Source: Macrostomum lignano (lineage: Eukaryota). From it: DNA of 64,000 nt. The notes under the pieces are model-generated. The model did no database searches. It was not told the DNA's origin and was given only the letters and a program-made list of their open reading frames with translations. A program made the position numbers and the translations under genes. Below are positions 2,625-38,936 of the stretch, one piece after another (within the stretch, counting starts at the first letter, position 1; each line of letters starts with the position of its first letter). The DNA is taken from positions 124,001 to 188,000 of the forward strand of contig NIVC01000922.1 in the NCBI GenBank assembly GCA_002269645.1, written 5' to 3'.

Positions 2625-3713
2625 CCCACTAAAAACGGGTTATCGGATTGACATCGGAATCTGGCCGGATTTTAGCAGGGCAATCGGAATCTGGTGGAAC
2701 TAGATTTGCAAGCAAAAAAACGATGAAAAATGTGCTCCAATGACATCCAAAAACTACACAAAGTATTTCCTGGCTTTCTTTGCTTCTCGGAAGCACCCCG
2801 GAAACATACCGGAATATGAGGCTCCATATTCCGACCGGAATTTACACTGCACCCGAGCCGTCACTTTCCGACAATAATTTTGAACGCAAGCTTCGCAAAA
2901 ATATCAGCATACTTATCAACTAGTATGATGACTGTCCACTTTGAAGAAAAAACTCTTTTAGACGGGAATTCTGCGCCCTCGCAATTTGCAAGAAGAACAG
3001 CTAGCAAGCTTTGTTTTACGCGATCAAGTGTTGAAGCTATTGACCAGTTTAATTTGCACACTTCCATTTTCACTAATTTGCGCTCGCTTGGAACATCAGC
3101 TCTTTTGAACACAGCTCCTTTAGCCAACACAGGACAGTGAGACCACAACTTTGAACTCTCTGCAACTTCATCTGTGGTTACACGCAAATACTATACTAGT
3201 ATGCTACTCCTTTCGTTCATTTAGTGCATTTCTTTAGTCTCCTATTATCTTGTATGCTTGAATTTTTTACTGGCGGACTATATAATCGCTAATTTCAGTA
3301 ATAAAATATATTATTATTGTTTATTTGTGATAACAGCTAGCCAAAACTATTATACTATACCTAAAAAGAACAATTTGGTATACTGCAATACTGCATAGTG
3401 AGTTTTGACCATAGTGGCACTTGCAGAAGCTTATTAATATTTGAGTACAGTATATGATAGGCACCAATTGTCCAGCTATACATAATATATACTGACATTG
3501 TACTATACTCATAGCCAGTTTCAATTCAGACCATCGCAAAGTAGTAAACAAGGGCCAATTCTATAAATTCTATCTAGTGCTAGTCCTAGATTTCTCATAT
3601 TGAAAGAGACTGCAAATTAAAATAATTGACTACATTGTGTACTAAAAACATATAAGGCAAAAGCTAGTTCTAATAATAAATAAGTATTGTCATTTATTGA
3701 TTAATTTGATTTA

Positions 3714-5624
3714 ATGGCTTTGCCAAGTCGTGCATCAAATAGACAGGTAGCCAGGGAAATGCAAGAAATACTACAAGAGCTTCCGACGATTGGGGCTACA
3801 AATATTGAGGCTAGGCTAGATCTAGAAAATGTGATGGGACAAAATGAAGATACAAAGAGCAATGCTGAGCCTGAAGAGACATTCTTTGATGCAGTGGGTC
3901 CAATGCCAATGGACTTTGATAGCCAAATGCATGCTCTTTTTGAGGAAGAAATGGATGAAGAAGTTGAAGAACAAGATGACTCTCTTGGCTATAATAGACC
4001 TCCGCCACTTACTTTGGTGCAAGAGTTACTATTGTTTTACATAACATTCAATATTACTAGTGCTGCCATGAATTACCTACTTCGGCTTTTGGCTCGTTTC
4101 TTCACTGACATACCCACTTCTGTCTACATGCTTAAGAGGCAGTGTCCAAGCACAGAGATCACGAGGTTCAATGTCAATAATGGTCATGTTGCCTTTCTCT
4201 CCATTGTGGACAATTTGAAATTTTTACTTGATTCCAAAATCCTTACAATTCCATCTGGAATTACAAACTTCTTTGTTTCCTTAAGGGTAAATGTTGATGG
4301 TCTTCCTTTATTCAAGTCATCTAGAATCAATCTTTGGCCTATATTGATGCTAGTAAATAATTGTTTTAGACCTGTGCCATTTGGCCTTTTTTGTGGCATT
4401 GGAAAGCCTGACCTACATGTCTTCTTAGAAAGGTTTTGTTCTGAAATTGCAGGTCTACAGAATGGTTTTGACTATAATATGAAAAGAATTTTTATTAAGT
4501 CAATTGTCTTTATCTGTGACACACCTGCTAGAAACTTTATTCAATGTTTGAAAGGTCATTCCAGTTATCTTGGCTGTAGTTGGTGTCGTCAAGTAGGAAA
4601 TTACACAGGTGACAGAATTTGTTTTTCTAATACCATTGCAGAGGCTCGAACAAATCAAGATTATGAACAAGGGCGTGAAAATAACCAACTTGGTATTTCT
4701 CCACTAGCCAGGATTGTTCCAATGTATTCCAATTTTGTACCCGACCCAATGCATATTGTCTACTTAGGGGTTGTAAAGAAGTTGCTCAAATTTTACTTCC
4801 TTGGAGCAAAGCACATTCGACTTGCTTGCAAGTTGTCATCCCAATTAAAAGAGGAAATAAATAGAAAAATAATGTATATTAAGGAATTTGTTCCTTCAGA
4901 TTTTCAAAGACGGCTTCGCACTTTTGCTGACATTGAATACTTTAAAGCAACGGAATTCCGCCAATGTCTTTTGTACTTTGGTCCGTTCCTTTTTAAGAAT
5001 ACCTTGCCAAAGGTCTACTTTAATCATTATCTATTATTGCATTGGTCAATTTCAGTCCTTAATTCACCTGAGTACTGTGAAATTTATTTTGATGCTGCTG
5101 AGGCTTGTTTGAAAAAGTTTGTTGCTGAGGCACCAAGCCTATATTACAACAGTGTAGTTTCTTATAATTGGCATGCTCTGTTGCACCTTCCTGAGTTTGT
5201 GCAAATGTATGGCCCACTTGACACGTTTTCAGCTTTCCCTTTTGAAAACTACTTGCAATTGATCAAGAAGAGAATTCGTTGTACCAATCATGTTTTTGCC
5301 CAATCTGTCAACCAGTTGTTGAATGTGAGATTTTTATATTCTAATGACAAGTTGGGTGACATTGGTTTTACTAATAAGAGTCCTAATAACTGTGCTATTG
5401 TTGATGGAAAGGTTGTCATTGTCACCAATTTAAATGATGGTCTTATTTCAGGCCAGGTTCTCACATTTGATAGAAGCCTTTATTCCTATCCATATCCATC
5501 AAAATCAATTGGCATAGGCTACTATAAGCATTCAAAGACATTTGTATCCAACTTGCAACCTTCTAAGAAGGCCATTCTAATTCCCTTTGGCGGAGACTAT
5601 CTGGTCATTCCTTGCATCAAGTAA
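3714..5624 (+). CDS. EnSpm/CACTA-like transposase, 636 aa, uninterrupted
   Basis: Motifs NVDGLPLFKSS..LWPI, CDTPAR..F..LKGHSSYLGCSWC, DPMHIVYLG, FKATEFRQ.LLY, YNWHALLHL and YGPL..FSAFPFEN, typical of animal CMC transposases; lies inside the TIRs. Confidence 0.88.
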   Translation: MALPSRASNRQVAREMQEILQELPTIGATNIEARLDLENVMGQNEDTKSNAEPEETFFDAVGPMPMDFDSQMHALFEEEMDEEVEEQDDSLGYNRPPPLTLVQELLLFYITFNITSAAMNYLLRLLARFFTDIPTSVYMLKRQCPSTEITRFNVNNGHVAFLSIVDNLKFLLDSKILTIPSGITNFFVSLRVNVDGLPLFKSSRINLWPILMLVNNCFRPVPFGLFCGIGKPDLHVFLERFCSEIAGLQNGFDYNMKRIFIKSIVFICDTPARNFIQCLKGHSSYLGCSWCRQVGNYTGDRICFSNTIAEARTNQDYEQGRENNQLGISPLARIVPMYSNFVPDPMHIVYLGVVKKLLKFYFLGAKHIRLACKLSSQLKEEINRKIMYIKEFVPSDFQRRLRTFADIEYFKATEFRQCLLYFGPFLFKNTLPKVYFNHYLLLHWSISVLNSPEYCEIYFDAAEACLKKFVAEAPSLYYNSVVSYNWHALLHLPEFVQMYGPLDTFSAFPFENYLQLIKKRIRCTNHVFAQSVNQLLNVRFLYSNDKLGDIGFTNKSPNNCAIVDGKVVIVTNLNDGLISGQVLTFDRSLYSYPYPSKSIGIGYYKHSKTFVSNLQPSKKAILIPFGGDYLVIPCIK

Positions 5625-6325
5625 ATCAAGTTATTTGCCTGAAGTCCATCGTCCATAATTGTGTCTTGCCTAAGTTGTTTACAAATGTAATTGTGTATAC
5701 AGTCAGCAAATATAATTTAATTAGGTCTAGAATAAAAAAATATATAATTCCATATATATTATATAATATTGAAGTAGTATAGCCATTATAGCCATTAACA
5801 AACTAAAGCATTTGTTCGGATCATGGTATGAAATAAGATGATCATTATTATTTTTATTATTATTATTAATTAATTTTATTACAAAAAACAATTATTATTG
5901 TTTTGTATAATTTCTATGCTTTATTATAACCTTCCTAAGTGCTTGCAAATATGAGTACGTATTATTTAAGTAATGTGTCCTTCAATGTGAATGTCCTAGT
6001 CAGACTATTTATGATTTTTGTGGCAGAATTCTAGTGTAAATGTATTTTGACAAGTTGTCTACTAGTAAGTTAGCAAGTAGCAATAGGCCCCTATGAACAA
6101 TTCAATAAACATTTTTTGTGTATCCTCTAAATTTGTAACTCACTTGTTCCAATGGAATAATTACATGTTATGTGCCATATTATGCTGTAAAAACTTTAGT
6201 TACTGCTTGGCCAACATTACACCACAATGAGTAAATAGTCCTTCTTAGTACATGCAGTGTCTTGTGCAGTTGCTAAATCATTAAATAATAAAACTTTAGT
6301 TCAGTAATCTTGTTGCAGTGACTCA

Positions 6326-8836
6326 ATGAAGTTTATTGTGTATTTTACCTCTGACTATGAAGTAATAGAAGCTGATGAGGAAGATTGCCTTCTTGGCTCT
6401 TTTACTAAGTGGACTATTGAGCAATGGAGGCAAGTGGACAAACTTGAAGAAGTTCATATTCAGGTAATATATAATGACAAGTTGGAAGATTGCATTGTTT
6501 TGCAAGTTGTTCCACATGCCTGTGACACCAGTGACACTGTTGCCATGCTACGAGCTGTGGTCAAAGAGAAGCACTATCGTCCAAGCAAGCTACTAAAGAT
6601 TCTGCCAGATCGTGTTCGATCCAACAAAAGACAGACATTTCCTCCTATGAAGAATCTTGAGACAGACAATGATGCAACAGATATTGATGCTGTAAGTATA
6701 ATGTAAAATAATATTTAATTTAATATTTAGTATACAACTAAGGTCTGCCACGTGCGTTAATATAAAATATAAAATAATATAATTGTAGGTTGCTGATGCA
6801 GCCAGCCATGGACAAGCCAACCGGGGTCCCACACAGAGAAGTGAATCATTGTCTGGGTCTTCTGGTGTTGTTTGCCTCCCTCCACTGCCAACTCTGCAAG
6901 CTTCGGGAATTGCAGAAGTACGTGCTTACATTTGTGTCTATTTAAAAATGTCAAGCATTTATAGTCTTTATGTATTCATGCATTTGGAGTACAGTATGCT
7001 TATTAATTTCAAATTATTGCACTTGGCAGTTTGCCAGACATATTACAAAATGATTGAGACAGTTTTAATAGTTTGGATTTTATTCTTTTCTTTAATTTCT
7101 CTAATCTAACACTGTCTTCACCTCACCCCAATGCCAGGCTAGCGTGACGGCTTGTTGTCACACATCACATTGTTATGTTTATATCTATACACCTCTGTTA
7201 TGTCTGCATCATCTCATTCAATGCGTGTATGGTTACTGTTGAGTATATCATTTCTCCTACTATGTTACAGATTAACGTGCTGAGAAAAAAATTATCTATT
7301 CTAATCATTTCTTTACCAACCCAGGCCTACGACGGCACAATGGCGCAGAGCACTGTCAGGAAACTTCAGAACCGCACCTCCATGGCACCTCCACCAGAAC
7401 CGCAGTCGATCGACAGCCCAGCCTTTGAGCGACTGCACCCTCAAGCAGCTCTCAATTCGTCTGGAAGCTCGACGCCTACTCGACACCCGTCTAGGCAGTT
7501 TTCGTGCACTCCAACTTCAGCCCCAAGAGCCAGCTTCTCGCGCGAACAGCTGCGACAGCCTGCGCAGGTAATTTGTAAAACTCGTTTCATGAAGTCTTGC
7601 AACAGTTTTTTTCAGAACTTGCCACGGTTTCTAACGAAAATTTAATCCACAGTTTTCAGCTCTGCCTCAGCTGGAAACGCAAGCCAGAAGCCAGGTTGAG
7701 GCTTGTGGGTACACGTGGGGATCTGTTGAAGGTAATGGAGTTATTGTTATTGACGCTGAGATAGCAGTAGTTGACAACAGCCGCAAAATGTAACTGGTGA
7801 CCAGCGCACACTCGTTGCTTGAACAGCTAGGTGGATGAAATCGACAGCGTCTAGCTTGGAACTGGCACGTAAATTGAAGTTAATTTACTATGCAACTTTC
7901 AACTCATTATTCAGGGCTCTACTGTCTGCAGCTCTTGAGCATTCGCGAACTCATGAAGCTAAAGGCCACGATTGAGTCGTCCAGTCTCCGGGGAGCTGCT
8001 GCGGCACCCACGCTCGAAATTCCATTCGGGCTTCCTGTCGCAAACGAGGCCGACCTCAACAGTGCAGTCGAGAAGATTTCTGCCAGTGCGGAGGCCAAGA
8101 CTGCGCTGGTTAGTTAATATCTTATGAGCATTTCTCTTACTATTAAACTTCCACCATGCGTTCGGAACTTCGGTACTGTAGACTCGGGGAAATGGTCCAG
8201 ACGCTTTCATGTGTGAATTTTAGACTTCGTTCATTCAGAAAAAGTGCCTGGGCCCTTCTGTGACTCAGTCTGTTCGCTATGCGATGAACGAGCTTCTGGC
8301 GCGAGACTTCCAGCAGCGCTTCAATCGCACTGGCGGCAAGGATGCCCGAGGCCGTGGCCAACAAGAGAACTCCAAGATGTCTTTCGACAAGTGCTTTGGA
8401 GGGATTGTGAAGGGTAGGTTATGCTTTACTGTCGCATATGTACCAATTACCAGAGTTGATTCTTAATAGTGATATCAATAGTGATATACTGTCTGATACA
8501 ACGTACTGATAAATGTACGGGGTGGGTACTGCCATAACCATACGTATTCATGCCGTAATTCATACATGTATTTCTCTCAGGTCAACAGTTGTGGACTTGA
8601 CAACCTGCTTATGTTGTGATTGTCAAATTTCAGACGCGTTGGGCTCTTCATTTACGCTGCACGACATCAATAAGGCAATCGAACGGTTCTTCGATGGCGT
8701 CCGGAAGCGTCGAAGCCACGAGGGATCAGCTGAATCGGACGTGGCCGGCGGGCATGGCGCCCCCACTCCAAGCAGGCGTCGCTCGACGATGCGAGTGCAA
8801 CGCATATCCGACAGCACTGACGAGGAAAATATGTAA
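6326..8836 (+). CDS. Second, spliced gene of the CACTA element (DUF4806-like accessory protein)
   Basis: GT-AG exons with compatible phases: 6326-6691, 6789-6917, 7325-7567, ~7653-7731, ~7915-8108, ~8224-8413, ~8631-8836 (later boundaries approximate). C-terminal LPVANEADL...VRYAMNELLA...FNRTG...KMSF...INKAIERFF resembles DUF4806 proteins that accompany animal CMC elements. Confidence 0.65.
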
Positions 8837-9708
8837 CTTGGTGGCATAGTAAAAAATTGTCCCTTTCGTCGAAACTTCGCGCTAACTTAAATTTTAACTG
8901 CTCCGAGACCGAAATGCTAGTGTAGTACAACTGGGTTTGAAGGCCGCGAATTTGAACAGTTTCACTACAGCAATTTAACGTCTTCAGTTCACTCGCAGCG
9001 CAGCGCCTTACAATTGTTCACTCGATTGCAGCGCGCTTTTCAAACTGGTGCGATTATATTTTAATTAGACAACGATTAAAATAATTTATAATTAATATTT
9101 GCTTTATTTTCAAGGGTCAAAAAAGTAGAAATTAATAACATAATAATGCTATTTGCAATTGCTATAGTTACTATATAGCAACAATTAAATATTTAGTGCA
9201 ATTTTAACAGAACATTTTCAGCCGCACTACACTAGGCCTAATCAAATTGACCTAACAACTATAAAATACTTGTCGAACTGTCTCCAACCTGCACCCTATT
9301 AGTGACTGCTTTGGTGGCCCACCACGCGTTGCTGCAATGTTCTATTTTGTAAACACTAAATAAACACTTATTATTCCTTTCCATCTGCTGCCATTGAGCA
9401 ATTTTGTATTTGATGTAAAATGATGCACACCCGGTCTTTGTGTCATTGAATTTTCAGACGGGATCGGGCTGTCTAAATGTACATGCGTGACTGCGTGTAC
9501 ACTGATCTTCGGCTACATTGTAGCACATGCATGTTTGTACTCGCTTTGTGCTTCGTCATTTATATCAGCTCGGAAAGTGAAACGAAAAGCTCTGGATGAG
9601 TCCGATCGTCAAATCCGATCAGAATCCGAATGGATTTCCCGGGACAAATTTCCACTCGGTTTCCGAGCTGCATTTCCGATCGGAATCCGACCAAGCTTTT
9701 TTAGTGGG

Positions 9709-10100
9709 ATCCTGGGCTAACGACAACGGTCTGGAACTCTCTGAGCCCAAAACTTTTTGCCATTATGTTCACCAGCAGAATACGCTGGAACATACGACCT
9801 CTGCAGTTATACGGCAGAGATATTGCCTTCGCGCACCAGACCAGATGGCTCGGGGTCATACTTGACCACCGGCTCAACTGGTCCTTCCACATGAAAGCAA
9901 AAGCCAAGCGTGCCTCAGCCATCCTGGCCCAGCTCCGACGAGCACTAGGCACTTCTTGGGGTCTATCCCCAAAGCGGCTTTGGTGGATCTACACTTCCGT
10001 AGTTAGACCTGCCATTACGTACGCCTCGGTTGTCTGGGTTAGCGCTACCCAGGTCAAAAGCCATGCAGATTTGCTCAACACGATCCAGGGCAGAGCGTGT
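9709..10100 (+). mobile_element. LINE fragment 2: RT C-terminal/thumb region
   Basis: WANDNGLELSEPKT, a 1-nt frameshift, then WLGVILDHRLNW...LWWIYTSVVRPAITYASVVW...LNTIQGRAC, which continues as RLICNATRSTP after the next insertion. Confidence 0.85.
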
Positions 10101-10583
10101 TGTGACGATTAAATGGCAGACTCGGGATCAAATGACGAAGGCGAATACAACAGAGGCAAATTTGGTAGCGGTAGTACTCGATGATAGTGACGAATGATGC
10201 GGGCGATTGCCGCAGTTCTCATTTATTGTACCCGTATGAGTGGATAGTTAGGCTCGTTAGTTATCAATTCCGTCTGGGTTGTTAATAGAGATGGGCCTGA
10301 GTATTTTGCTGAATCCGTAAGGAATGCACTGGGCGGCTGCGCAACAATAAGATAGATGATAGAGCGAGTTGAGAGCCTGAGGCAATGGCGATGATGTGAT
10401 GGCAGTGATCGAATGGTGGCGGTACTCGTAGCGAGAACCCTGTACAAACGGTAGTGGTGGCGTGATCGAGAAGTGGCGATGGCGGTGGCGCGACTGAGAC
10501 TTGGCAGAGGCATGGCTTAGAACTGTGGCGGAGCGAGGGGAGAGAGAGCGCGGGCCGGAAAACGAAAGAGGGCCTAACCCCGG

Positions 10584-12621
10584 TATTACGGTTTAGAAAC
10601 TCCGGGGCTCTGGTCAGTTTTGGGTCGCCGATCCGGAGACTGCAAACGGGCTGGGATCTCCGACCGGAGATCTTAAAGGGTTTAGGATCTCCTTCGGAGA
10701 ATACAAACGGTTAGGGATCTCCACGATCGGAGATCCGTAACCGTTGTGGGATCTCCGGGGCATGGTCAGGTCTCCCTATCCGGAGATCCAAAACCAGATT
10801 CTGTTATCCCCTCGGAGATTCTACACCGTTTGCCGATCTCCGTCACGAGTGCAATAACTAAGGTTTGGTTTAGGATCTCCGGTTACCGATCTCCCCATTT
10901 ACATAAAGTCCGAAATCGTAATCGTGCAACGAGTGTTGTTGTAGTTTCCTTCTCTTAACCGTTTAACAATTTTCATCGAAGCATAAAAGGTAGTAAAAAT
11001 CGCTAACAATGTCAGTCATTTTTTCCATTTCAAGACATTTTACATTCCGCACGATCGTAGTTTAACGTTTCACTGTAGCCAGTATATTTTGCAGCTGTGA
11101 TGCACCATACCAGGGCAGAAATACGAGCTAGAAACCTTTGATAAATACTCGTACGAGTGCCGTCAGTTCAGAGTCCCGCATGCGATTCTAATGAAAAACT
11201 GCAGATTCGCTCAACCATTGTACTTGTAGAAAGCACTTCTTGAGATGCCTGCCATTGACCCGTCTAGTGAGTCCTCCTAATCGATATACGTTGCGACCGA
11301 GGCACCTCGTCACGATGTAGACCTGCTGACCCCAGGTGTATCGCATCTTGCCACCCTTTCGATCATCCCTCCGCAGATTTCGAAGCCGAACTCTGTCTCC
11401 TCGCTTTAGCTCTTGAGCTCCAGCAGCCGAAACCAAGTGACGCTGTCGCATCTTTTCTTGAGCGATCTTGATTCTACGCGCAATTAGTTTTCGCGCTGCG
11501 GCTCGCTTCTTGTCCTTGTTGGCAAGCAATCGCCTGTTGATTTCCATCGGCTCCGGAACCGAAGCCAGTGCTGCGGCATGATCGCCTAGCAATGGCTCAA
11601 AGCCAAAGGCGGCTCTAAAGATAAATGGAGGCATATGAACTAACATTGTCTGCTACAGTATAGAAATATGCTTAATAAAATATACTTGATTCTCTATAAA
11701 CTTTATTACTTTCATATTTTACCTGCACGGCGAGAAGCCTGTCACCGAATGTCGGCGGCTGTTGTATGCGAGTTGAACATCATTCAGCATGGAATCCCAG
11801 TTAGTTGGTTCCTCAGAATCACACCGCTTTCTCAGTAGATTAATGCACGTTTGGTTGAGGCGCTCAGTTTGACCGTTTGTCTGGAGAAAATTAGTGATCT
11901 ACTCGTACTTAAAAAATGATGCACCACTGCTACATAATATCAGAAGCATAAAACATTACTGTTAAGGTTACCTGTGGGTGGTAAGCACCAAGCACCAGTA
12001 GATTAATGCACGATTTTTCACCATGTAATAACAATGCTCCATCGTGAATGCTAAAATTTCTGCTCTTTTCCCTGATGCGCCTCTTCAAATTGCTTTTCTC
12101 TCTCGAGTTCAAGTCGACAGGAATTTGTGCGTAGTCATGGTTCAGTACATAAAAGAATATTTGATTCAAAGTAGCCATTTGACAAGTAGAAAGTAAAGAT
12201 AACCGCAAACAGACAATTACTCACAATATGTTTTACTTCACTGCTTATATATGACAATCAAATCCCTCGACAAATGCACACAGACGAAAAATGATGCACA
12301 AGTCTGGCCAACCCTAAATTTAGCCCTCACAGGGCATGCAAATGTACGATGTACTAGATGGATGAACTCATCGAAAAAGTTGCGCAAGCTATAGGCTGCT
12401 CACGAGCTGGGCTTTCTAGAATCAGAGAAATGTAATTTATCTCTTATCTTCCAATTTTCTAAGATAATAATACTCCGGAGAGTCTAGCATGGCGGCGATC
12501 TGTAACCTTATCTTATGTCATGGTTCCTGATATCCGTGAGGGCGATTGTAAAATCGCGTAATTTTTTTGGTTGGATCGCCGGGCCGGAGATCCTTAACTC
12601 CGGAGAGCAGAAACCCTAACA
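10584..12621 (-). mobile_element. Ginger1-like DNA transposon (Gypsy-integrase-related), internally deleted, 2038 bp
   Basis: Flanked by CCGG direct repeats (10580-10583, 12622-12625). Imperfect TIRs TATTACGGTTT..CTCCGG / TGTTAGGGTTT..CTCCGG (15/22 match). Many subterminal GATCTCC/CTCCGG motifs. Contains a spliced integrase gene. Confidence 0.7.
11188..12178 (-). pseudogene. Spliced Ginger-type integrase/transposase with an in-frame internal deletion (~263 aa)
   Basis: Exons 12178-11972, 11880-11723 and 11614-11188 join in frame with GT-AG ends: ...KRRIREKSRNFSIHDGALL...AYHPQ|TNGQTERLNQT...WDSML..VQLAYN...TGFSPC R|AAFGFEP...GDRVRLRN..RKGGKM..W...VNGRHLK (GPY/F-like tail). HHCC finger and the first catalytic Asp residues are absent. 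Confidence 0.75.
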
Positions 12622-12932
12622 CCGGGCGCCCCAGCCAGACAGGACTGATAACGAGCGGGCTGGGGTGGGTGCGCGACAAAAGTTAATTTCAGGCTAGCAT
12701 AATATATGCGCGGCTTTCCTATTGGCCGGCGCGAAAACCAACTTGAAAACAGAAATTATCGATCGCATTGTACATTGGCTTTACGAACGCCACGCAATGT
12801 TGTTTAAAATTCTTTGGGCATTACTATAAGCAGACGTTAGAGTACGAGACCATCAAATTAACAATATTATAGAATGGCACTGCTTTCGCTAAAACGGCCC
12901 TCGTCGGGGCCACCTCAACTGACAACGTCACA

Positions 12933-14270
12933 GTGTAGGCTTATCTGCAACGCCACCAGGTCCACGCCCTTTGCCGGCATGGGGGCCTTCCTTAATCTAC
13001 CGCCTCTCGACCTCTTCGTCAGGGGTAAGGCGGCTAGAACGACGCGGCGTTTACTTGATGCCGGTGTCAAATTCCTTTACATGAGGGCACCTGCTAAGCG
13101 GAACCTCGTCCCACATAGCGACCTGTGCCCCAACATTCTCAACGAGTGTCAGGCCAATCGCGTCTTCACCGATGGCATTGCCTCAACGCTCAACCTGAGA
13201 CAACGCTACTCCGTAGCTATCGACTCGCGCGATACCATCAATGACCAATGGAACCATGGTGAGCTTCACCGACGGTTCTAAGCAGTCAGCCAACACCGGT
13301 TTTGGTGTTGGAATCTTCCTGAACGGGAGGGTCATCGCAACCCACGCTCAGTACACTGGGGTCAACTCCAGTGTCTTCCAAAATGAAGTTCTCGCCATCA
13401 GCTCCTGCATTGCAGAGCTTCTCGCCACTGGCGTATCCGGTAAGAACATCATTTTCCATTCGGACAGCCAAGCTGCCTTGCACGCCATCAGTGGCTGTAG
13501 TACCAATTCTGCTACAGTCCTCTACTGTATCAAACTCCTCAACGTGTTGGGCTCCACCAACAAAATCACCCTTAAGTGGGTTCCGGGGCATGTGGGGATC
13601 CGATGGAATGAGTTGGCTGACGCCCTTGCAAAAGTTGGCGCCTCCGGCTCCTCTCTCGGTCCCGAACCTCTTGTCCCAATTCCTGGCTGTGTCATTGACT
13701 CGCGCATCAAAGCGTGGATCAGGACCCAGCACCGCTCGGCTTGAGCGAACTGCACTACCTGCAGGCAATCCAGAGGCGCTGTCCCTCAGCCCTCTCACCA
13801 GCTCCGGAAGCTCCTCTTGCGCCTCTCGCGCAGAGACATCCGGGCTGCCACCATGACCCTCTCAGATCACGGCTGCTTCTCTAGGCACCAGTACCTGCAG
13901 GGCAACGCCATCAACGCCATCTGCAGTTTCTGTAACTCAGGTGACGAAACCGCTGAGCATTTCGTCAGCATCTGTCCCGCCTTTACGCGAGCCAGACTCA
14001 CTTACCTCGGGCCACACACATCTATTACTGAAGCGTGCAAACCCGAAAACTTTCATCAGCTCATGCGCTACCTCCAGGCCACCCGTAGGGCTGAACTCTC
14101 CTTTCCAGAGAGCACTATAGCTGCTGGCGACACTGGGTGACCTCCCTGGGCGGCGCCAACCCTTAGTCCATAGCGACGCGTCGGCCATTCAGGGATTAGC
14201 GGAATGGGCGCTCGCGCCTTCCCGCTGTGTCCCCCCGGGACAGCCCTGCAGCTAAGTCAAGTAAGTCATG
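12933..14270 (+). mobile_element. LINE fragment 3: RNase H, C-terminal CCHC finger and 3' end
   Basis: FTDGSK...SVFQNEVLAI...SDSQAAL...LKWVPGHVGIRWNELADALAK (RNase H) and CSFCNSGDETAEHFVSICP; frameshifts near 13260 and 13745; stop at 14138-14140; TAAGTCAAGTAAGTC-like tail at ~14252-14268. Confidence 0.85.
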
Positions 14271-14769
14271 TACCGCTACGTCAACTACTACGTCTAGTAG
14301 ACAACTACTACGTCGCAAGTAACTATGTTGAAATATGGCTTAATGCATCAGCTATTGTGAGTGACAATCCATGTGGTACTCAATACTTGAAAGCATTGGC
14401 TATAATGGACATGGAGGCAGCAGTATACCAAAGCCCAGAGTGAGAAATTAAGTCAAAAAACTTTTAGATATCATTCTGATGCTACTACGACATTTCGTTC
14501 GTAAAAGCAATTATCATCATCAACGCCCTAAAAATGTCGAAAAAACGCCCAAGATTCATGAATGATTAAGAAAATGTTGTATCACTGTCGATAATTATAT
14601 GGGCTCCGTAGAAAAATACACAAAATACTACTCACACAAGAACACTCCAGCTATATTGTTCCAGCCAATAAAAAGAAAAAACTAACACAGAGACTCTCAT
14701 TTCATTTTTCATTGTGGGAGAAACCAGAGTTCATAGAGCATAGCACCGATTGGTTGAGTAGCAAACGGT

Positions 14770-15381
14770 TCAATAACTTCCGCCCTTGTTCCAACGCTGT
14801 CCGCTCCTGTTCCAGCGCTGTCCACCTTTGTTCCAGCGCTGTCCGCCCTTGTTCCAGCGCTGTCCGCCCTTGTTCCACTGTCTGCCCTTGTTCCAGCGCT
14901 GTCCGCCCTTGTTCCAGCGCTGTCCGCCCTTGTTCCAGCGCTGTCCGCCCTTGTTCCAGCGCTGTCCACCCTTGTTCCACTGTCCGCCCTTGTTCCAGCG
15001 CTGTCCGCCCTTGTTCCAGCGCTGTCCGCCCTTGTTCCACTGTCCGCCCTTGTTCCAACGCTGTCCGCTCTTGTTCCAGCGCTGTCCACCTTTGTTCCAA
15101 CGTTGTCCGCCCTTGTTCCAGCGCTGTCCACCTTTGTTCCAACGTTGTCCGCCCTTGTTCCAGCGCTGTCCGCCCTTGTTCCAGCGCTGTCCGCCCTTGT
15201 TCCACTGTCCGCCCTTGTTCCACTGTCCGCCCTTGTTCCAGCGCTGTCCGCCCTTGTGCTTTCTGCTCCAGTCGATGGCTCTGACGCCGGAGCTATCAGG
15301 CAGATTGGCGGCCGCGATGGCGCACAAAAGCGCCGCAGAGGCCGCCAGAAGAAGAAGATGCCTCGAAGACTTTATCGGCAT
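14770..15381 (-). CDS. Secreted tandem-repeat protein or peptide precursor, 203 aa: signal peptide + 23 x K-G-G-Q-(R)-W-N
   Basis: ATG start, hydrophobic N-terminus (LLLLAASAALLCAIAAA), 18 heptamer + 5 hexamer units, TGA stop. Much unit variation is synonymous in this frame (AAG/AAA, GGC/GGT, CAG/CAA, CGC/CGT) and indels are 3 nt. Confidence 0.8.
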   Translation of the reverse strand: MPIKSSRHLLLLAASAALLCAIAAANLPDSSGVRAIDWSRKHKGGQRWNKGGQWNKGGQWNKGGQRWNKGGQRWNKGGQRWNKGGQRWNKGGQRWNKGGQRWNKSGQRWNKGGQWNKGGQRWNKGGQRWNKGGQWNKGGQRWNKGGQRWNKGGQRWNKGGQRWNKGRQWNKGGQRWNKGGQRWNKGGQRWNRSGQRWNKGGSY

Positions 15382-16064
15382 TCTGTTTGCTTGAAGCAGA
15401 TACCTTGGTCAGTTAGCAAAAATGTTTACCTGTCTGAGTGCAATATACATCGGTTATTTATGCTGAATTTGAAGAGGCACACGATAGATTGATTACACAA
15501 ACGCACCTGCGACAGAGCGTTGATGACAGGTGAGTATTCAGATGCGTTGAGACAGTCTCAAATTGACAGGATCGTTTTGCCGCGGAATTAGACGCGTTCA
15601 ACCAGATTCAAACGGTGTATTGCTTTGGCAGTCTGAGAGCGTTGCTCAACTCGGTTCTGATAAAATTCTCCAAGCTGTACCCTTCATGCTCAAGAAGACA
15701 CTGCCGGCAGAAACCGCTGCAAGTCGTCATTAAGTCGCCAGTGACCGCTCTTAGCGCTCATTCGGAGCAGGTACAATTTTACAGATGAATTGTAAACAAA
15801 AAACTGCGAATGTGCTTACTACATACTAGATAACAAAGAATATGCACTCTTATTAGCCTAGAGTGTACGGCCTCTGACACGATTCTTATTTGTTGAGAGA
15901 TAGTGCGCACAATTTACTAGCAATAATACAGGCCCTAATTTCCTTTTTATTTGTGCTTTTTATTGTACCGCAATTACATTTAGCATTGTGCAATAGAATT
16001 AACACTAGCAACTCATCTACTGTTTGCAGGATCTTCTTACTGCTAATGCGGAAATATATATATC

Positions 16065-16487: not shown

Positions 16488-17312
16488 TCAAGCGTTCTCA
16501 GTCTCAAGCGTTGGACTGCACTTGTTTTCCCGATGGAGCAATACGCCACCAATGTAACAGCGCAGCAGATGTATGCCCCACCAGACTGCGTGCACCAGAG
16601 GCATCCCGATGAGAATTAAGCCGAACACAACACCAGTTGTCAGTCCCGGGTTGTTCCAGTCCAAATATAGATAGATTACATTGTTACGATCCGATAGCCA
16701 GTAGAATACGCTGAACAAAACGTAAACCACTGCGTAACAAACGGCGTAGATAATATTCACGAAGCGAACCGGAACGCCGCCAAAGAAGGCTTCAATGAAC
16801 ATAAACACAGAGTTAATGCCGTGCTCCAACAGATCTAAGGCGGCAATTGGAGACGAGTTTTCGTACAGCAGAGAGAAGTAAGCTACAGTGACGAGCAGAG
16901 CAGCATCCGTGGCGATCGTGTGCAGCAGCCACTGAAGCCGGAAGCCCGACTGTCTAGCCACCGAATCTAGAGCTCTCTTCAATTCGGACCGTTTGCGGAC
17001 AGCTTTCAATTGGTCGGCAGTTTTATAGCCACAGTCAGTTAAACTGAAAGATTCTCCAGCAGCGATGCTGCAACACCCTGACGAGCACACGCACAATAAG
17101 ATTGTGTTCACCAGAGCACAAGTAAAGTACAGAGTCATCATAAGGTAGCTCCAGATCGTCAGGTAGGCCAGGTAGAAATAGGAAGTGCTTGAGCTTGAGC
17201 TTGCAGTAGGAGAATGAGAACTTGTAGCTGTTTCTGTGCTGGTGCTTGACGAATCTTTGTTGCTAGATTGGACAGACACATAAATGAAAACCGAGATGCA
17301 GGTGCCTCCCAT
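16488..17312 (-). CDS. Rolling stone-like (FAR-17a/AIG1-type) multi-pass membrane protein, 274 aa, single exon
   Basis: About six hydrophobic segments; YLTIW, HTIA, EHGINSVF..IE, VPVRF and IYLYLDW..PG motifs characteristic of rolling stone-like proteins. Confidence 0.75.
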   Translation of the reverse strand: MGGTCISVFIYVSVQSSNKDSSSTSTETATSSHSPTASSSSSTSYFYLAYLTIWSYLMMTLYFTCALVNTILLCVCSSGCCSIAAGESFSLTDCGYKTADQLKAVRKRSELKRALDSVARQSGFRLQWLLHTIATDAALLVTVAYFSLLYENSSPIAALDLLEHGINSVFMFIEAFFGGVPVRFVNIIYAVCYAVVYVLFSVFYWLSDRNNVIYLYLDWNNPGLTTGVVFGLILIGMPLVHAVWWGIHLLRCYIGGVLLHRENKCSPTLETENA

Positions 17313-18344
17313 GAGACAGCGCAGAAGCAGAAGTAGCCAGTTCGGGATCCACTGTGGGTTAGCCGCGAGTGTTGGTTATTGTTAGCTGGTATACTTAAAA
17401 GACAACACGTGGTCGTTTAATTTTAAGGTCCTGTGACTGGAACAACTAGCATAGTGATATTCTTTAGCAACAGAAGGCCTTACCTGTGAGTTGACGAAGA
17501 ATTCATAGTATTTGTATTTTAGACTCAGGTTCTTTTTGATGTCTCGCTCCTTTCTTAGCGCCCGCTTCACTGCTAGACAACCACCTGATGATGGACTGCC
17601 ACGCGTACGAGTATTTGCGGACTCAATTGAATAGCTTGAAGTACTGTCTGGCATGTTTCAGCCTGAAATCGTGTACTCAAAAAATGAATAACTCTTACAA
17701 TAGCCTTTTATTTGCTTCTCTTCTTACGGTTAGCTGCCGTGGTGGAAAGATTTGAGAAGGCCTCAACTTGGGATGCGCAATTTCAACTTGTTTTTTACGT
17801 ACAGCAATTGCATACGGCTATGGGACTCTGCTTGTACTCTGTTTTTTGTCAAAATAATCGAGCCATTCTGAGTAGAGGTACCGAGACAAAAGGGGAGGCA
17901 GTGAAATGTACTGAATAGAAAGATGCCGAACGAGAAGAGATGAGCAAGTGAAGAGATGAGCAAGCTTATACAGTGTCGCTTTTAGACATACATATGGAAG
18001 AATGGAGTGATTATGGACTGTGCAAGGCCGCATGCATGGAGAGAATTAAAAAATTAAGCAGTTCTAACATTATCCAAATCTAGTTAACCATGGTTTAAGG
18101 CACATGCAGGGACTACTATACTAAATACTCGGGGACGGAAAACGAGCGATTCATGCAGATTTTGATGGGAGGCCAATTTTATAAGTTCTCTACGGACCGC
18201 AATTGTGTCGTCAAATCACTTTATTCGCAGAATTTATGATTATTTATCCCTCTAGCTATCATATAGTATCACTACACGCCTACCGTACAAAATGCCTCCT
18301 TTCGTATTAGGGAAAACCGGATCCGGTTGGTTATGATGGGTCCA

Positions 18345-24444: not shown

Positions 24445-27400
24445 CATAGTTGCCACACCTGCGCTATTTTAGCGCTACTGCGCTATTTTGTTTCAGCTGC
24501 GCTACTGCGCTATTATCTTTGAAATGCTTTTAATTCTGCGCTAAATGAGTTTTATAGTTACACTAAGTCAACATTGTTTCCCTTCCTCTAAGTCTAAGTC
24601 AAAGCACACTCTTTACTTTCTTTAGAATTGTGTAGAAAGAACTAAAAAGATGCAGTCAGTCGGGGCTTGCCACTTGGCCTTACCCATCCCTTAGTCTGGT
24701 GGGGTGTTGCTGATTGGGGCCCTGATTGGATACCCCAAGTTTCAAGCCCTACCCCCCCCCCCAAAATGGCCAATTCCTATTGGCTTAGCAAATAGTCAAT
24801 CCCACTCACCCCCATGGGTCTGCTTTTTATTCCACTTTAAAATCAAAACATGTTATCGAACTTAAACTAAATAAACAAGAAAGTGTCTGAGTCCAGACAT
24901 AGAGTTCTTGTATCAAGGACAAGCATAATGCCTCTTAAAACAAAGCCAAGTCAACGAGGCACAAAATGGGGCAACGATTGGCTATAAGAAAAAGACAACT
25001 CTGGCGTTCTAATCTCTAAGTGGTGTCAACAAGACAGAATTGAAGGCAAGGCCTATTGCAGGGCCTGCTCCAGGTCATTCTCAATAATGCAGCATGGAAT
25101 CAGCGCGATTCGTCAGCACGCTGATGGACAAAACCACAAAATTCAAATATCTGCTATTGGTCAACAAAAGACCATGACAAGTTTCTTCTCGGTTATGAAC
25201 GACGATCCAGCAAAGCAAGCTGTGAGTTCGACTACTATCAGCGAGCAAGCAATGGCGGCCAATTTGCGTTTTTCATTACTGGTGGCCCAAAAGGATCTGT
25301 CATTTAACCTAATGGACCAGTTTACATCGCTGCTTCCGGTTGCATTTCCGGACAGTGCTATCGCTCAGCAATTTGCCTGCTGCAGAACTAAAACGACCTA
25401 TCTTGTTAACGAGGCATTGGCACCATTCGCAAAGGAGCAAATGTTTGACCTTCTCCGCAAGTCGCATTTCTCCATTATGCTGGATGAGGGCACTAAACGT
25501 GATCGCTCCTACCTGGCAGTACTTGCAAGAGTATTCTCCACTGAGCACCAAAATGTCCCAATTGTAATGATTGGCATCAAAGAGCTGACGGACAGCACTG
25601 CTGAAGGAATGAAGACAGTTGTTAAGGAACTACTTCGTGAAGGGAATATACCTGTTAAGCATGTTCTCTCGGTGATGACTGACTCATGCAATGCAATGCG
25701 AGGTGAGCAATTGCAGAACTAGCTTGTTCTTTTATATGAATGTCCTAATTACCTATAATAATAAGTATGTACTTATAATGAAAGTTTGTGACTGCTACAT
25801 GCACTACTATTTACATGTCTCTACTACTGTCTCTACTATGTCTCTACATGTACATTTGCTATTACTACGCTCGTGCGAGTAGTAGCAACTGTCTTATATT
25901 ATAGAAATAGTATACTAGTAAGTAGTAACGTACATGATACAGTAATCTTTTAGAACAGTTAGCAGTTTTTTTTCACAACCTTATTACAACATGTGAATGA
26001 CATGATAACTTTGTAAGTTTTTATGGAATGTTTAATGAATTAAACTATTTATCCTAACATTCCGAAGGTCAAAACAATGGCCTGCTTGCTAAACTGAAGG
26101 AGGAGCTACCGCACCTAATCGATGTTGGCGGGTGTAGCCTACACCACGTGCACAACGCTGTCCAATATGCGGTAAAGGCTTTGGACACTTCTGGAGAGAC
26201 AGAAGGACTCCTGGATGATGTTTATAACAATTTTCGGTTCAAAAGTCGACGCAAAGCCTTCCATCAGGTATGCCTCTTGTGCGAACAAAGTTTATTTCTG
26301 GTTTTAAGAATAAGAACAATTACAAATACATATATTCTGTCTTTGCGATACTTTTATCCAACTTAACTGAACTTCTGTCAGGCATAATTTATTGAGATAA
26401 TAAAAAGATCATAGTAAGTACACCATAAAGCAAATGAGCAAATTATAGCAAAATGCACATGTTCTTTTACCTATTACTATCGCTGATAGTGATATCATCA
26501 GTTTGTTGCCCCTGAACTCTATGAATAAATGCTTCTAGTTCTCTCCATATTATTCTAAACAGTACCGCTCATATTGCTCTGCCACCCACTGTTGCATTTT
26601 AGATTCAGACAGCACTGAATCTGACTGAGCATGCATTTATCCGCCGAGTGGAGACCCGTTGGCTCCAGGTGCTAATAGTGGTGCGTCGTATTCTCGAGCA
26701 GTGGCCTGCGCTGCAGCAGTTCTTCTCAAACCAGCAGAACATTCAGAATGACCGAGCTCGCCGCATCAGGGAGGCCTTGACCGACAAAGCTCTAGCACGC
26801 CTCCAGTTTCTCGAACAAGCTTTGCCCAGGTGCGAGAAGATTGAGAAGCTATTTCAAAATGAGTCTACTCAGGTCCACCTTCTTTCATCGTCACTGGACG
26901 ATCTCTGCGGCTGCATCCTGACGTGCTTTGTCCGAGAAGACGTTGTTAATGAGACCAACTCTCTGTCAGACCTCGCCGATCGTGCCAAGGAACGCTCCAA
27001 TCAGTTGAACAATGCAAGTCTGGTGATTGGTGGCAAGACCCGTGAGACTGTCGACAGACTGTCGCCAATTGATCGCATTGGATTCTACAAGAGCGTTCGC
27101 GATTTCTATTGTGAGTTAGTGCAGAGGCTTTTTTCATATCTGCCACTGCAGAACAAGATCCTCCGAGCTCTTCGCTTTGTCGACCCTAACTATCTACTCG
27201 GAGAGGACTTCAACTTCGACAGAACCGTGTTAAGGGTCGCCAAAACGATGAGCACCGTCATCGCAGTTGATGAGCTTGATGAGCTGCGTCTCGAAGTCAC
27301 CAGGTTGCGTGTCTCAAACTCGGAGCTCGAAAAGTCGAATCCTGAGAAGTTCTGGTCATGCCTGCCCACTGCGACTTACCCGCTGCTATCAAAGCTAGGG

Positions 27401-28540
27401 CGCAGTGCATGCTGCATTCCGCATGGCAACGCGGACAGCGAACGGTTTTTAAAGTGGTTGGCCAACGACTTAACGAAGCAGCGGAACAAGCTTTCCGAGT
27501 TTACGCTCAACTCTCTGCTCACTATCAAGACCTGGCTGAAGGCAAATTTGGCCACTGCACATACAGTCACAATTGAACCAAGCCTAATTGCCATTGGCTT
27601 TGAAGCCCGAAGTAAAGCGGCTGATCGCGCTCGATTAGAACAGCGGCAGCAGGCGATGAAGAGACTGCAGAAGAAGATGGAGGAACAGCGCGCGATTGAA
27701 GCTGCAGCGAAGAAGGCTCAAGAGGAACAGCAGCAGCAGGAGGAGGATTTAGTGACGCAGCAGCAGACTGTTGACGAGATGCGAAGGAAGGCGCAAGAAA
27801 TGCTGGCAGCTGCATCGAAGGCGGAAGCTGCATTCCGAAAACGGCTTAAGCGACAGAGCGTGTCCAGTCAGCCTAGGGGCGGTAACAAAATTGCGCGAAT
27901 CGAAGGTGCTACTGCCGCCGGACCCTCTAACAAGTGAAGTGAACATTGAAATTTTTGCTAGTTTGACTTTTATGTTAACTGAGCTGACGGAGAGTTAGAA
28001 CTTAGTTTGATTTCAAAATAAAGAAATGAGTTTAAAATCGAAATCAATCGACTATAGTGACAGATGCTTTTTACAAAGCGATTCCGGAACCAATAGAAGA
28101 AAAAATGTAACTAATAATTGTTAAGAACATAATAAAGTAAGAAATTCGTACGATTTTAAAACTACCTTTAGTAAGTCAAGCCTTTCCCTAAAGTTATCAA
28201 ATATCTCTAGGCTTTTTCTCGTCTAGGAGCTACTCGAAAATAGTTATTCACATACTTGTGTAGGAGTATGTGTTCGAGCTATATGTACATGTATGTGTAC
28301 TTGCTGTGCAAGTGTAATCCAATCCAATTGTCAGTAACTGAAATAAGTTTTTTATTATCATTTCGTTACTCAAATAAACAGGTTAATGTAGCTTTTCGGT
28401 TTCCTAAGACTTGACTTACTATTATTTATTAATCCGTGGTTGCTTTTTAATGATTACATAACTTTAAAACTAATTATTTTACGCTGCGCTAAATCTTTTC
28501 TGCTGCGCTAATATTCTTTTATTTTCCTGTGGCAACTATG
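24445..28540 (+). mobile_element. hAT DNA transposon, 4096 bp, full length
   Basis: 13-bp TIR CATAGTTGCCACA / TGTGGCAACTATG; perfect 8-bp TSD CTAACTAG (24437-24444, 28541-28548); subterminal GCGCTA repeats. Confidence 0.93.
24928..27937 (+). pseudogene. hAT transposase, 3 exons, with one premature stop
   Basis: Exons 24928-25702, ~26069-26267 and ~26603-27937. BED-like finger (YCRAC...HADGQNH), IMLDEG, TDS, GGCSLHHVHN (CxxH), ETRW and dimerisation motif IPHGNADSERF...RNKL...LNSLL. In-frame TAA at 24985-24987. Confidence 0.85.
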
Positions 28541-37500: not shown

Positions 37501-37860
37501 AATACAACGAGGCATCCGGCGTCTAATAGCGGCCCAGGTTGACGAACCAAGGAAGTTTTTCCGGCTGCCGCTGTCTAGCAAGAAAGGGACTTCTCGACTC
37601 GCAACTCGACCTGTGACGTACGGATCGGCCTCACGCGCATGAATTTTTTGATTCGGGGAGGTGTCCACGAAACCTCCGCACTCAGCGTCGCTTACTGACG
37701 AGCGACTGTCGGACTGGGCATTGGCGCCTGCACAGCCGACATCCTCTTCTTCTCGCGACCGTTCGGAATCTGCCAAGTAGCCTGGGCTTGGACCTCGCGG
37801 AGGGCGGTGCCGTTGTCGCTCTCCGCCTGGCCGTTTCCCTGGTTCTGGCGCATCGGGCAC
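31529..37860 (-). CDS. pol: Gypsy pol (protease, RT, RNase H, integrase), interrupted at ~32982 by the RTE insert
   Basis: LLDSG protease, YMDD RT, LDTDASD RNase H, HSSPLCGH...CRTC HHCC finger and DDE core (CDVVGP, TDQG, VENLN). Removing the RTE and one GACG copy restores one frame to the stop at 31529 (1761 codons). Confidence 0.93.
31940..32981 (-). mobile_element. 5'-truncated RTE-clade LINE inserted in the Gypsy pol C-terminus
   Basis: ORF ...ACVESTITF...LGHVLRMPDTSLTKKCVLGW...RDRESWKETVK followed by four Cys/His fingers; stop at 32004; (GAA)n tail; GACG duplicated at 32982-32985 and 31936-31939. Confidence 0.85.
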
Positions 37861-38936
37861 TGGGCGTTACGATGACCGGGCTGTCCGCAGCCATAGCAGA
37901 TCATAGCTCTCTGTGGCGGACTGGTTGTCAGCTGTTGGTCACGCTGCACCAGGTGATCAAGCATTCGCTGCTGCTTCTCGATCAAGTCGGTTAGAGTCAG
38001 CAAGGCTTGGGCGGTGACGTCGGGCTTCGGGTCGCCGTCCTTCCCGTCCAACATCCTAACCGGGGGTTGAGCGGATCGCTGCGCCAACTCTTTGGCGCCT
38101 TCTAGTCGTCGTAGCTCTCGAATCGCCGCAAGAAGATTGTTCGGGCGAACCCAGTACAGCCGTTCACGCAGATCTGGAGTCGTCCGGATACCAGCAAGAA
38201 ATTGATCAGCAATCTCCTTCTCGCGGTCTTCAGGATGCATTCGAGGATATGCACGTTCATCAAGAGTTCTCAGGGCGTCAGCGAACTCTTCTGCTGACTC
38301 ATTCTTGCCTTGTTGACGACGTCGCAATAGTTCTCGATACTCATCAGCACCACCATGACGGGCAAATCGCTCAATAAGACGCTGCTTGACCTCCTCGTAG
38401 CTGGCGAAACGCGGAAGATTCATACCAAGCAAGGAAGGATACGCAGTAGCCAAATCAAGACTCGCGATGAGGTGTTGCTTCATCTCGAACGGGTCGACGA
38501 TGCGCTCCATCTCGCAACGCTGCTCGAACGCGGCAAGCCAGACATGAATGTCCTGACTTGGAGTAAACTTCACAATTTTAACTTGTTTACTCACGGGCCG
38601 CTCAATCTGCTGCTGCAGAGCTGCCATCATGGTCCTCACGTCCTGGTGCGTGATGTTCCGGCCGATGTTGTCCAGGCCTTGCAGAAGCTCGTCTGGCGGG
38701 TCGTCGGACGCGTCGCTTCTGGCACCTCGCCTCGGCGTCGGCTGCTGACCAAAGTCGTTGATCGCTGCTGCTGCTGCGGCGTCTGCTGCCGCAGGCCTCG
38801 AACTGCTGATGTGCTGATCCAGCCGGCTGCTGCACCGGCTCTCGTCTCGCTCGTTGAACATGTTGAACTCGTAGTCGTTGGCCGAAGTCGTTCTCGAAAG
38901 AGCGGTTGGCTTGGGTGTGTCGTAGTCGGATCTCAC
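37692..38936 (-). CDS. gag: Gypsy gag, ~414 aa, with CCHC zinc knuckle
   Basis: Capsid-like region (WLAAFEQRC...YEEVKQRLIERF...QGKNESAEEFADALR) and CYGCGQPGHRNAQC; first ATG at ~38862. Confidence 0.92.
   Translation of the reverse strand: MRSDYDTPKPTALSRTTSANDYEFNMFNERDESRCSSRLDQHISSSRPAAADAAAAAAINDFGQQPTPRRGARSDASDDPPDELLQGLDNIGRNITHQDVRTMMAALQQQIERPVSKQVKIVKFTPSQDIHVWLAAFEQRCEMERIVDPFEMKQHLIASLDLATAYPSLLGMNLPRFASYEEVKQRLIERFARHGGADEYRELLRRRQQGKNESAEEFADALRTLDERAYPRMHPEDREKEIADQFLAGIRTTPDLRERLYWVRPNNLLAAIRELRRLEGAKELAQRSAQPPVRMLDGKDGDPKPDVTAQALLTLTDLIEKQQRMLDHLVQRDQQLTTSPPQRAMICYGCGQPGHRNAQCPMRQNQGNGQAESDNGTALREVQAQATWQIPNGREKKRMSAVQAPMPSPTVARQ
37833..37839 (-). promoter_or_regulatory. Probable -1 ribosomal frameshift slippery site G GGA AAC
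   Basis: X XXY YYZ heptamer in gag phase within the gag/pol overlap; pol is in the -1 frame; downstream GCGGAG/CTCCGC stem. Confidence 0.7.

Follow-up and report, generated by a model that had tools for sequence, protein, structure and literature searches.

A tandem-repeat reading frame with a signal-peptide-like leader in Macrostomum lignano: a candidate young gene for a secreted, tryptophan-rich polycation

In a 64,000-nucleotide stretch of the Macrostomum lignano genome (contig NIVC01000922.1, positions 124001-188000, assembly GCA_002269645.1; hereafter the window) we have found an unannotated open reading frame (ORF) of 203 codons, which runs from ATG to TGA on the minus strand at window positions 14770-15381 (NIVC01000922.1:138770-139381) and joins a signal-peptide-like leader to 23 near-identical units of the heptapeptide KGGQRWN. 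Whether it is a gene stands about evenly in the balance; read as such, it would be a young, lineage-restricted M. lignano gene or proto-gene coding for an uncleaved secreted polycation. It is the leader that makes the ORF more than a bare minisatellite.

Architecture of the reading frame and its leader

The frame is closed upstream by a TGA 30 nt ahead of the ATG, which is the first one thereafter and has an A at position -3. The leader (residues 1-25, 15307-15381, minus strand) opens with the n-region MPIKSSRH, with a charge of +2, continues with the hydrophobic h-region LLLLAASAALLCAIAAA and has cleavage sites of the A-x-A type around residues 23-25. It is followed by a 17-residue spacer, NLPDSSGVRAIDWSRKH (15256-15306, minus strand), which carries the only two acidic residues of the mature product as well as its only dibasic site, R40K41, and whose end, D-W-S-R-K-H, resembles a decayed repeat unit on direct reading of the sequence. 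The array itself (14788-15255, minus strand) has the consensus AAG GGC GGA CAG CGC TGG AAC and comprises 16 units of KGGQRWN, four of KGGQWN and one each of KSGQRWN, KGRQWN and RSGQRWN, 18 units being of seven residues and five of six. A decayed last unit, KGGSY with the TGA stop (14770-14787, minus strand), has the TGA in the position of the unit's TGG. Tandem Repeats Finder placed the array at 14779-15257, with a period of 21, 23.5 copies, 88% matches and a 102-nt higher-order period, and both array edges grade into the flanking sequence by decay. The initial annotation of this DNA had described a single ATG-initiated frame with a hydrophobic signal-like N-terminus, a spacer ending in R-K-H, 23 units divided into 18 of seven and five of six residues, and a repeat free of acidic residues, all of which was borne out, with no Asp or Glu found in the array. 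The GC content is 0.60-0.62 within the ORF versus 0.41 in the upstream and 0.36 in the downstream flank. An imperfect palindrome of 18 nt, 78% complementary and with a 6-nt loop, was also seen in GCGGCC-type simple sequence at 15306-15347, within the region coding for the leader.

The leader is predicted to be a genuine signal peptide. Candidate leaders were scored with a heuristic that asks for a positive n-region, 12 uncharged residues with a mean Kyte-Doolittle value no lower than 2.0, and small amino acids at positions -3 and -1. In 106 kb of M. lignano sequence it was passed by two of 200 ATG-initiated ORFs of at least 60 residues, namely the present ORF and the N-terminus of a paralogue of the neighboring rolling-stone (Rost) gene, a true membrane protein; none of the remaining 198 non-genic ORFs passed. 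In a random control of 6 Mb of first-order Markov sequence with the local composition, a model that under-represents simple sequence of the kind forming the leader core, 27 of 10,268 ORFs passed (0.26%). AlphaFold2, run without an alignment, returned a single helix at residues 7-25 and a predicted local distance difference test score (pLDDT) below 50 elsewhere. Simple sequence, (CTT)4 and GCG/GCC-rich, codes for part of the leader's hydrophobic core.

Codon choice was compared with that of two Rost genes. Four of the six degenerate codons of the unit (GGC, CAG, CGC and AAC) are the commonest synonyms in those genes; AAG and AAA are used equally there, and GGA is not a favored codon. The GC content at third codon positions of the unique leader is 0.69, versus 0.56 for the other frames.

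Upstream of the ATG, a TATA-like ATAAATA (15455-15461, minus strand), 80 nt away, may serve as a core promoter. The initial annotation had proposed a 47-nt intron in the 5' untranslated region (UTR). The motifs GTAAAC, GCTAAC and ACAG do lie at 15429-15383 on the minus strand as it described, and resemble in style the real 132-nt intron of the Rost gene, with which the candidate has the hexamer GCTAAC in common; as an intron, however, the candidate is unsupported. In M. lignano the splice motifs are GT[G/A]AG for the donor, CAG for the acceptor and [T/C]TNCAG for trans-splicing (PMC8629364); the candidate donor misses the G at +5, the acceptor CAG is matched and the trans-splicing motif is not. 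The ATAAATA at 15461-15455 would set the start of transcription at about the candidate donor, and a transcript beginning farther upstream would include an ATG at 15450 with a competing frame. The AG at 15383 was also considered as a weak candidate for a trans-splice acceptor. The spliced leader of M. lignano has an ATG as its last three letters (PMC8629364). Joined at this AG, that ATG would not be in phase with the ORF and would start a rival frame ahead of it, so that trans-splicing here is not favored.

No gene is called at the ORF in GenBank. In the GenBank submission of the M. lignano genome, transcripts overlapping repeat annotation were removed from the 'coregenes' (PMC5730564), and because of this filter the missing gene call is uninformative. 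Likewise, the databases hold no M. lignano proteins derived from Logan or transcriptome shotgun assemblies, not even for the neighboring expressed Rost gene, so that the lack of transcript-derived matches to the ORF says nothing about it. A search of the whole window against Rfam gave no match, and a scan for bacterial promoters and terminators was discarded as irrelevant to an animal genome.

Predicted product and comparable proteins

The predicted mature product has about 178 residues, a mass of 20.9 kDa and an isoelectric point (pI) of 12, with 46 Lys and Arg and two Asp and Glu; it contains 24 Trp, 46 Gly, 23 Gln, 24 Asn and one Tyr, and no Cys. Tryptophan recurs with a spacing of 6-7 through the array, and the spacer Trp is set off from the first unit by 10. 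The AlphaFold2 scores (pLDDT below 50) predict that the chain is disordered. High pI, short repeats of Gly with Lys or Arg, regularly placed aromatics, and predicted disorder and signal make up the profile of low-complexity cationic adhesive proteins, and all of them are found here. In two units a change of Gly to Ser gives rise to an N-x-S sequon, NKS103 and NRS191 respectively. The initial annotation had called the ORF a secreted cationic Trp-rich repeat protein, and as a statement of coding potential this is supported by the signal-like leader, the codons common in the host, the pI and the 24 tryptophans.

If the ORF is transcribed, its product would be expected to enter the secretory pathway and to shed about 25 residues. 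The released form would be a disordered polycation of ~21 kDa, in which every unit of 6-7 residues has a single Trp, a single Lys and, as a rule, a single Arg, with Gly, Gln and Asn between them. From this composition, and by analogy, we infer that the secreted chain would escape further processing and may act as an uncleaved multivalent sticker-spacer polymer, which would self-associate through contacts of Trp with Lys and Arg and bind polyanions such as glycans, mucus, surfaces and possibly microbes by charge and Trp-Lys/Arg cation-pi contacts.

Relatives of the product were sought in protein and DNA collections that include no other flatworm genomes. An exact-sequence look-up found no record, Pfam assigned no domain, and a word-indexed search of 5.8 billion proteins returned nothing at E<=1e-3. 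A HMMER scan of 1.84 billion representatives gave 298 matches, down to 1e-42; all of those inspected were unrelated repeats with a 7-residue period, mostly translated minisatellites, and were rejected as homologues. None of them carries KGGQRWN, their repeats being others, such as DISGQRV, RGGRRWV, GGTNFNQ and RGGQNFD, and the matches were taken as periodic or compositional. Two unrelated proteins, P0134 with (RGGQNFD)n and P0019 with (DPQAWKN)n and then an SRCR domain, are of similar build, in that repeats of seven residues, one of them always aromatic, come after a signal peptide; they were taken to be analogues and not homologues. A degenerate DNA pattern for WNKGGQRWNKGGQ had no matches in metagenome contigs and prokaryotic genome contigs, the string GGQRWN occurred in no paper of the full-text literature searched, and the sequence was not found in the supplements of a prostate-transcript screen (PMC5977470).

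Proteins of comparable make-up are known from this and other animals. Mlig-ap1, the cohesive adhesive protein of the duo-gland organs of M. lignano, is secreted and consists to two-thirds of Gly/Arg/Lys-rich repeat (PMC8621496; Wunderer et al. 2019). Like the present ORF product it comes from the same species and has a signal peptide, low-complexity Gly/Arg/Lys repeats and strong positive charge, and such regions are poorly assembled in short-read transcriptomes. Mlig-ap1 is, however, thousands of residues long with a core of recognized binding domains, whereas the repeat ORF has 203 residues and no Pfam domain and adds strictly periodic Trp together with Gln and Asn; no sequence similarity between the two was detected in the protein searches. 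The eggshell (vitelline) precursors of flatworms, such as p14 and p48 of Schistosoma and vpB of Fasciola, likewise combine a signal peptide with short tandem repeats of Gly, Lys and aromatic residues, including runs of the KGG type. They are Tyr-rich for quinone tanning, while the repeat ORF has Trp instead and no detectable similarity to them. The foot proteins of mussels (mfp-1, with decapeptide repeats) and the Lys/Tyr/Trp-rich Dbfp7 (bioRxiv 10.1101/2024.10.16.618703) also have a signal peptide, short tandem repeats and a high pI, and a regular alternation of cationic and aromatic residues that is thought to work by cation-pi contacts and coacervation. The mussel proteins are based on Tyr and DOPA (3,4-dihydroxyphenylalanine), belong to another phylum and show no homology, the repeat ORF having one Tyr and 24 Trp. 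By analogy, adhesive proteins built of Gly, Lys or Arg and aromatic residues would be the closest precedents for the function of the product.

Locus copies and neighboring elements

The ORF lies 1.1 kb downstream of the Rost family gene BOX15_Mlig007025g2 and on the same strand. This gene (16488-17654, minus strand) has two exons and AATAAA signals at 15964 and 15951, and its ORF at 16488-17312 has a Pfam Rost match (1.9e-13) and is 100% identical to the NCBI sequence of BOX15_Mlig007025g2. Its single intron (17352-17483, minus strand, 132 nt) reads ACAG/GTAAGG ... GCTAAC ... CACAG/, the branch-like GCTAAC standing 6 nt before the CACAG acceptor. The M. lignano genome has 180 Mb in duplicated blocks that are at least 95% identical (PMC5730564), and copies of the present locus were compared by way of the Rost protein, whose 90% cluster contains two further M. 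lignano proteins on other contigs. The loci of these two, L005 (NIVC01000163.1, about 98% identical) and L006 (NIVC01001087.1), were set against the locus in the window (L001, identical to positions 6488-27654). Near the paralogous Rost loci L002-L004 no similar ORF was found.

A segment of 1,310 bp (14467-15776), comprising the whole ORF with 395 bp upstream and 303 bp downstream of it, is present in the NIVC01000922.1 copy and absent from L006, whose sequence to either side of it matches the window at 99.2-99.6% identity. The empty site in L006 reads CTGTAAAA followed directly by GTTTTTTGAC, and the filled site reads CTGTAAAA, then TTGTACC...ATATCTAAAA, then GTTTTTTGAC, with a 5-bp TAAAA microhomology. 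In the stretch compared, this is one of two large indels between L006 and the window, the other being of 7.08 kb (2627-9708). The first 208 bp of the segment (15569-15776) occur in L005 too, at 95.7% identity and contiguous with the Rost flank, suggesting that the segment was lost from L006 by deletion. After the shared 208 bp, L005 continues with 400 bp of unrelated sequence, and not with an unexpanded precursor, in place of the ORF-bearing piece, and the adjacent retroelement block is absent from it. The simplest history to be read from these alignments would be that the segment is older than the split between L001 and L006 and that L006 lost it through a microhomology deletion. The ends of the 1,310-bp segment were searched for terminal inverted repeats and for target duplications, with only the TAAAA microhomology and inverted matches of 12-13 nt at chance level as the outcome, and the ~170 kb of M. 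lignano sequence examined held no second copy of the segment and no other copy of the adjacent retroelement.

This retroelement is a degraded non-LTR (long terminal repeat) retrotransposon fragment (9709-14466, plus strand), with the C-terminus of a reverse transcriptase at 9705-10109, an RNase H domain at 13217-13741 and a Cys/His C-terminus at 13745-14137. Its ORF2 ends at 14140, and its 3' end abuts the ORF-bearing segment, which is read from the opposite strand. Within it, ~2.7 kb of unrelated sequence separates the reverse transcriptase C-terminus from the RNase H and Cys/His tail (12862-14137), and an in-frame stop occurs at 13742. M. lignano UniProt entries named for WSC, DUF3480 and GAE domains share pieces with it that are 48-89% identical, which suggests that fragments of transposable elements were fused into some gene models of the older M. 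lignano annotation.

Further elements were noted at these loci and elsewhere in the window. The 7.08-kb block that is missing from the 99.96%-identical copy L006 has a 4-bp overlap at its junction and contains an ORF of 636 residues with no Pfam match (3714-5624, plus strand), as well as the first 2.3 kb at least (6488-8836, plus strand) of a GenBank-called gene with a 466-residue product; the block probably represents a mobile element or some other large insertion. L005 alone carries in the 3' flank of its Rost gene an insertion of 1.37 kb (11835-13205 of that locus) with terminal inverted repeats of ~30 nt (GGCTGTCCGGAAAGTCGTGAGAATGT ... ACATTCTCGCGACTTTCCGGACAGCC), which looks like a non-autonomous DNA transposon. 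The window also contains an apparently intact Gypsy-type pol ORF of 1,696 residues with reverse transcriptase, RNase H and integrase (32770-38936, minus strand), a second non-LTR ORF2 of 1,152 residues with endonuclease and reverse transcriptase (50953-54411, minus strand) and an ORF with a hAT dimerization domain (26648-27937, plus strand). A field of minisatellites extends over 40990-63749, with more than 15 arrays whose units measure 17-32 nt and recur as many as 70 times, and with an extreme strand skew; one of them, at 48107-49993, has a period of 28 and 68.8 copies. None of the minisatellites of this field has an ATG-initiated ORF carrying a signal-like leader by the same heuristic.

Competing explanations, origin and meaning

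Variation among the units was examined in all frames. Seven of the 21 columns of the unit are variable, every change being a transition, and the variants travel as blocks of adjacent units (B-C-B-C; C-D twice), so that they represent only ~7 independent substitutions and ~1 deletion of 3 nt. In the frame of the ORF four of the seven variable sites are synonymous (six synonymous transitions being possible among 21; hypergeometric P=0.064), in the antisense frame FQRCPPL five are (P=0.041), and in the four other frames one to three, a comparison that rests on too few independent events and leaves the synonymous test without power. The initial annotation had stated that the changes are synonymous in this frame only, which is wrong, and had taken them to point to selection on the peptide; the synonymous excess is neither significant nor specific to the frame, and such selection is not demonstrated. 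It was right that indels are of exactly one codon. Length variants are of one type only, all five short units lacking exactly the CGC codon with no alternative placement of the deletion, and this is mildly favorable to coding. No stop is generated in the frame of the ORF by any unit variant. The antisense ORF itself (FQRCPPL repeat, 14786-15394, plus strand) was considered as a gene and rejected, as it has no ATG ahead of the array despite its five synonymous sites.

It is a real possibility, though one short of an even chance, that the array is a non-coding minisatellite with a chance ORF, in which the frame runs back 42 codons to an ATG by way of GC-rich simple sequence and nothing is expressed. 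The observations that speak for it weigh at the same time against a gene. Since the array is open in all six frames, the open frame is not evidence of coding; the window holds more than 20 other tandem arrays, and with 15% of the M. lignano genome being simple or tandem repeat (PMC5730564) chance ORFs of such a kind are expected genome-wide. Statistically, the substitution pattern is compatible with neutrality and fits the antisense frame equally well, variant blocks of several units are what unequal exchange predicts, and the array edges decay into the flanks. No canonical poly(A) signal (AATAAA or ATTAAA) occurs in the 303 bp 3' of the stop, only AATGAA and AATATA, and no homologue was found in any collection searched, among them the two M. 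lignano protein sets that the database contains. Copies of the locus differ by the segment as an indel, the ORF missing from L005 and L006, that is from two of three near-identical copies; such presence and absence is typical of intergenic DNA, although loss of homeologues is also common in this polyploid line. What a chance ORF does not readily account for is a signal-like leader of a kind found in 0.26% of random ORFs (under a model poor in simple sequence, as said above) and in none of the 198 non-genic ORFs, together with the good start context, the preferred codons, the codon-exact deletion and the sharp drop in GC on either side of the ORF.

The two other explanations concern the form of the product and the nature of the segment. 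The initial annotation had proposed a neuropeptide or host-defense precursor, in which convertases would cut at the Lys and/or Arg of each unit to release ~23 peptides GGQRWN/GGQWN (or WNKGGQ) acting as neuropeptides or antimicrobials. The order of a signal peptide and tandem near-identical short units, each with a basic residue, does recall flatworm neuropeptide precursors (npp genes), and in the 7-residue units an Arg stands at P4 of the Lys (R-W-N-K/G), which under the general rules for convertases is compatible with monobasic cleavage. This Arg is, however, missing in the five 6-residue units; the units have isolated Lys and Arg, the single dibasic site, R40K41, lying outside the array at its junction with the spacer. 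The npp precursors have Gly-Lys/Arg amidation and cleavage sites and spacers, whereas the present product has no Gly-Lys/Arg amidation signal, as had been noted before, the sole junction of Gly with a basic residue being a GR at residue 166, and no acidic spacer or anionic pro-region. Hydrophobic or aromatic residues number one per 6-7, far below known Trp/Arg antimicrobial peptides, no similar protein was found in the databases searched and GGQRWN in none of the literature searched, and a signaling-peptide gene would not usually be missing from two of the three copies of its locus. Cutting into signaling peptides is thus unlikely, and as an account of the whole ORF the precursor is very improbable; one dibasic site with no amidation Gly and no acidic spacers favors an uncleaved product, and the suggestion, also made in the initial annotation, of an uncleaved cation-pi adhesive or mucus protein fits better, its composition being the argument for it. 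The ORF-bearing piece of 1.1 kb could instead be the 3' untranslated tail or transduced flank of the abutting non-LTR retrotransposon, and the ORF an antisense accident. Minisatellites are found in the 3' UTRs of many long interspersed nuclear elements (LINEs), the retroelement ORF2 ends at 14140 on the plus strand with the segment beginning directly 3' of it at 14467, and L005 is without both the retroelement block and the ORF-bearing piece. Yet L006 keeps the retroelement to exactly 14466 (..AAGTCAAAAAAC) without the segment, suggesting that the element ends there, the other end of the piece (15568/15569) has no poly(A) or simple repeat, and terminal repeats and a second copy of the segment (in about 170 kb) were not found, all of which makes this origin improbable.

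As a young gene, the ORF would owe its origin to a 21-bp unit that multiplied in frame downstream of an ATG and of a leader able to act as the secretion signal. A bolder reading, and one much less likely than not, is that it is a gene near birth, a minisatellite expanded behind a fortuitous ATG and a signal peptide of simple sequence, whose product would be secreted onto a surface and work by cation-pi contacts based on Trp and not on Tyr or DOPA (in adhesion, mucus, egg or ejaculate), with presence and absence among three duplicated or allelic copies in a hidden-polyploid line. By analogy, the closest precedent for such an origin would be the antifreeze glycoprotein (AFGP) of gadid fishes, in which a fortuitous signal peptide precedes a microsatellite-like expansion and which is expressed, processed and functional, its non-coding ancestor having been identified (PMC6410882). 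Like the AFGP gene, the repeat ORF would combine a fortuitous leader with a duplicated short element, a TATA-like box, a Kozak context, presence or absence among related loci and occasional Lys or Arg within the repeats. The AFGP unit is Thr-Ala-Ala, whereas the repeat ORF, known from its sequence, would yield a basic Trp peptide from a 21-nt unit.

Should the ORF not be expressed, it would be no more than a common minisatellite in which one reading frame is open by luck. If it is expressed, it would point to a blind spot, as repeat-masking took such genes out of the deposited annotation, and trypsin would cut the product into pieces of 3-4 residues that are invisible to shotgun proteomics. 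It would then be an unusually clean secreted protein made almost wholly of one heptapeptide with a fixed pattern of Trp, Lys and Arg, and thus a natural test piece for Trp-based cation-pi adhesion and coacervation in a worm that already serves as a model for temporary adhesion. It would also offer a possible case of a minisatellite giving rise to a gene de novo, haplotypes with and without the ORF being available within one laboratory line.

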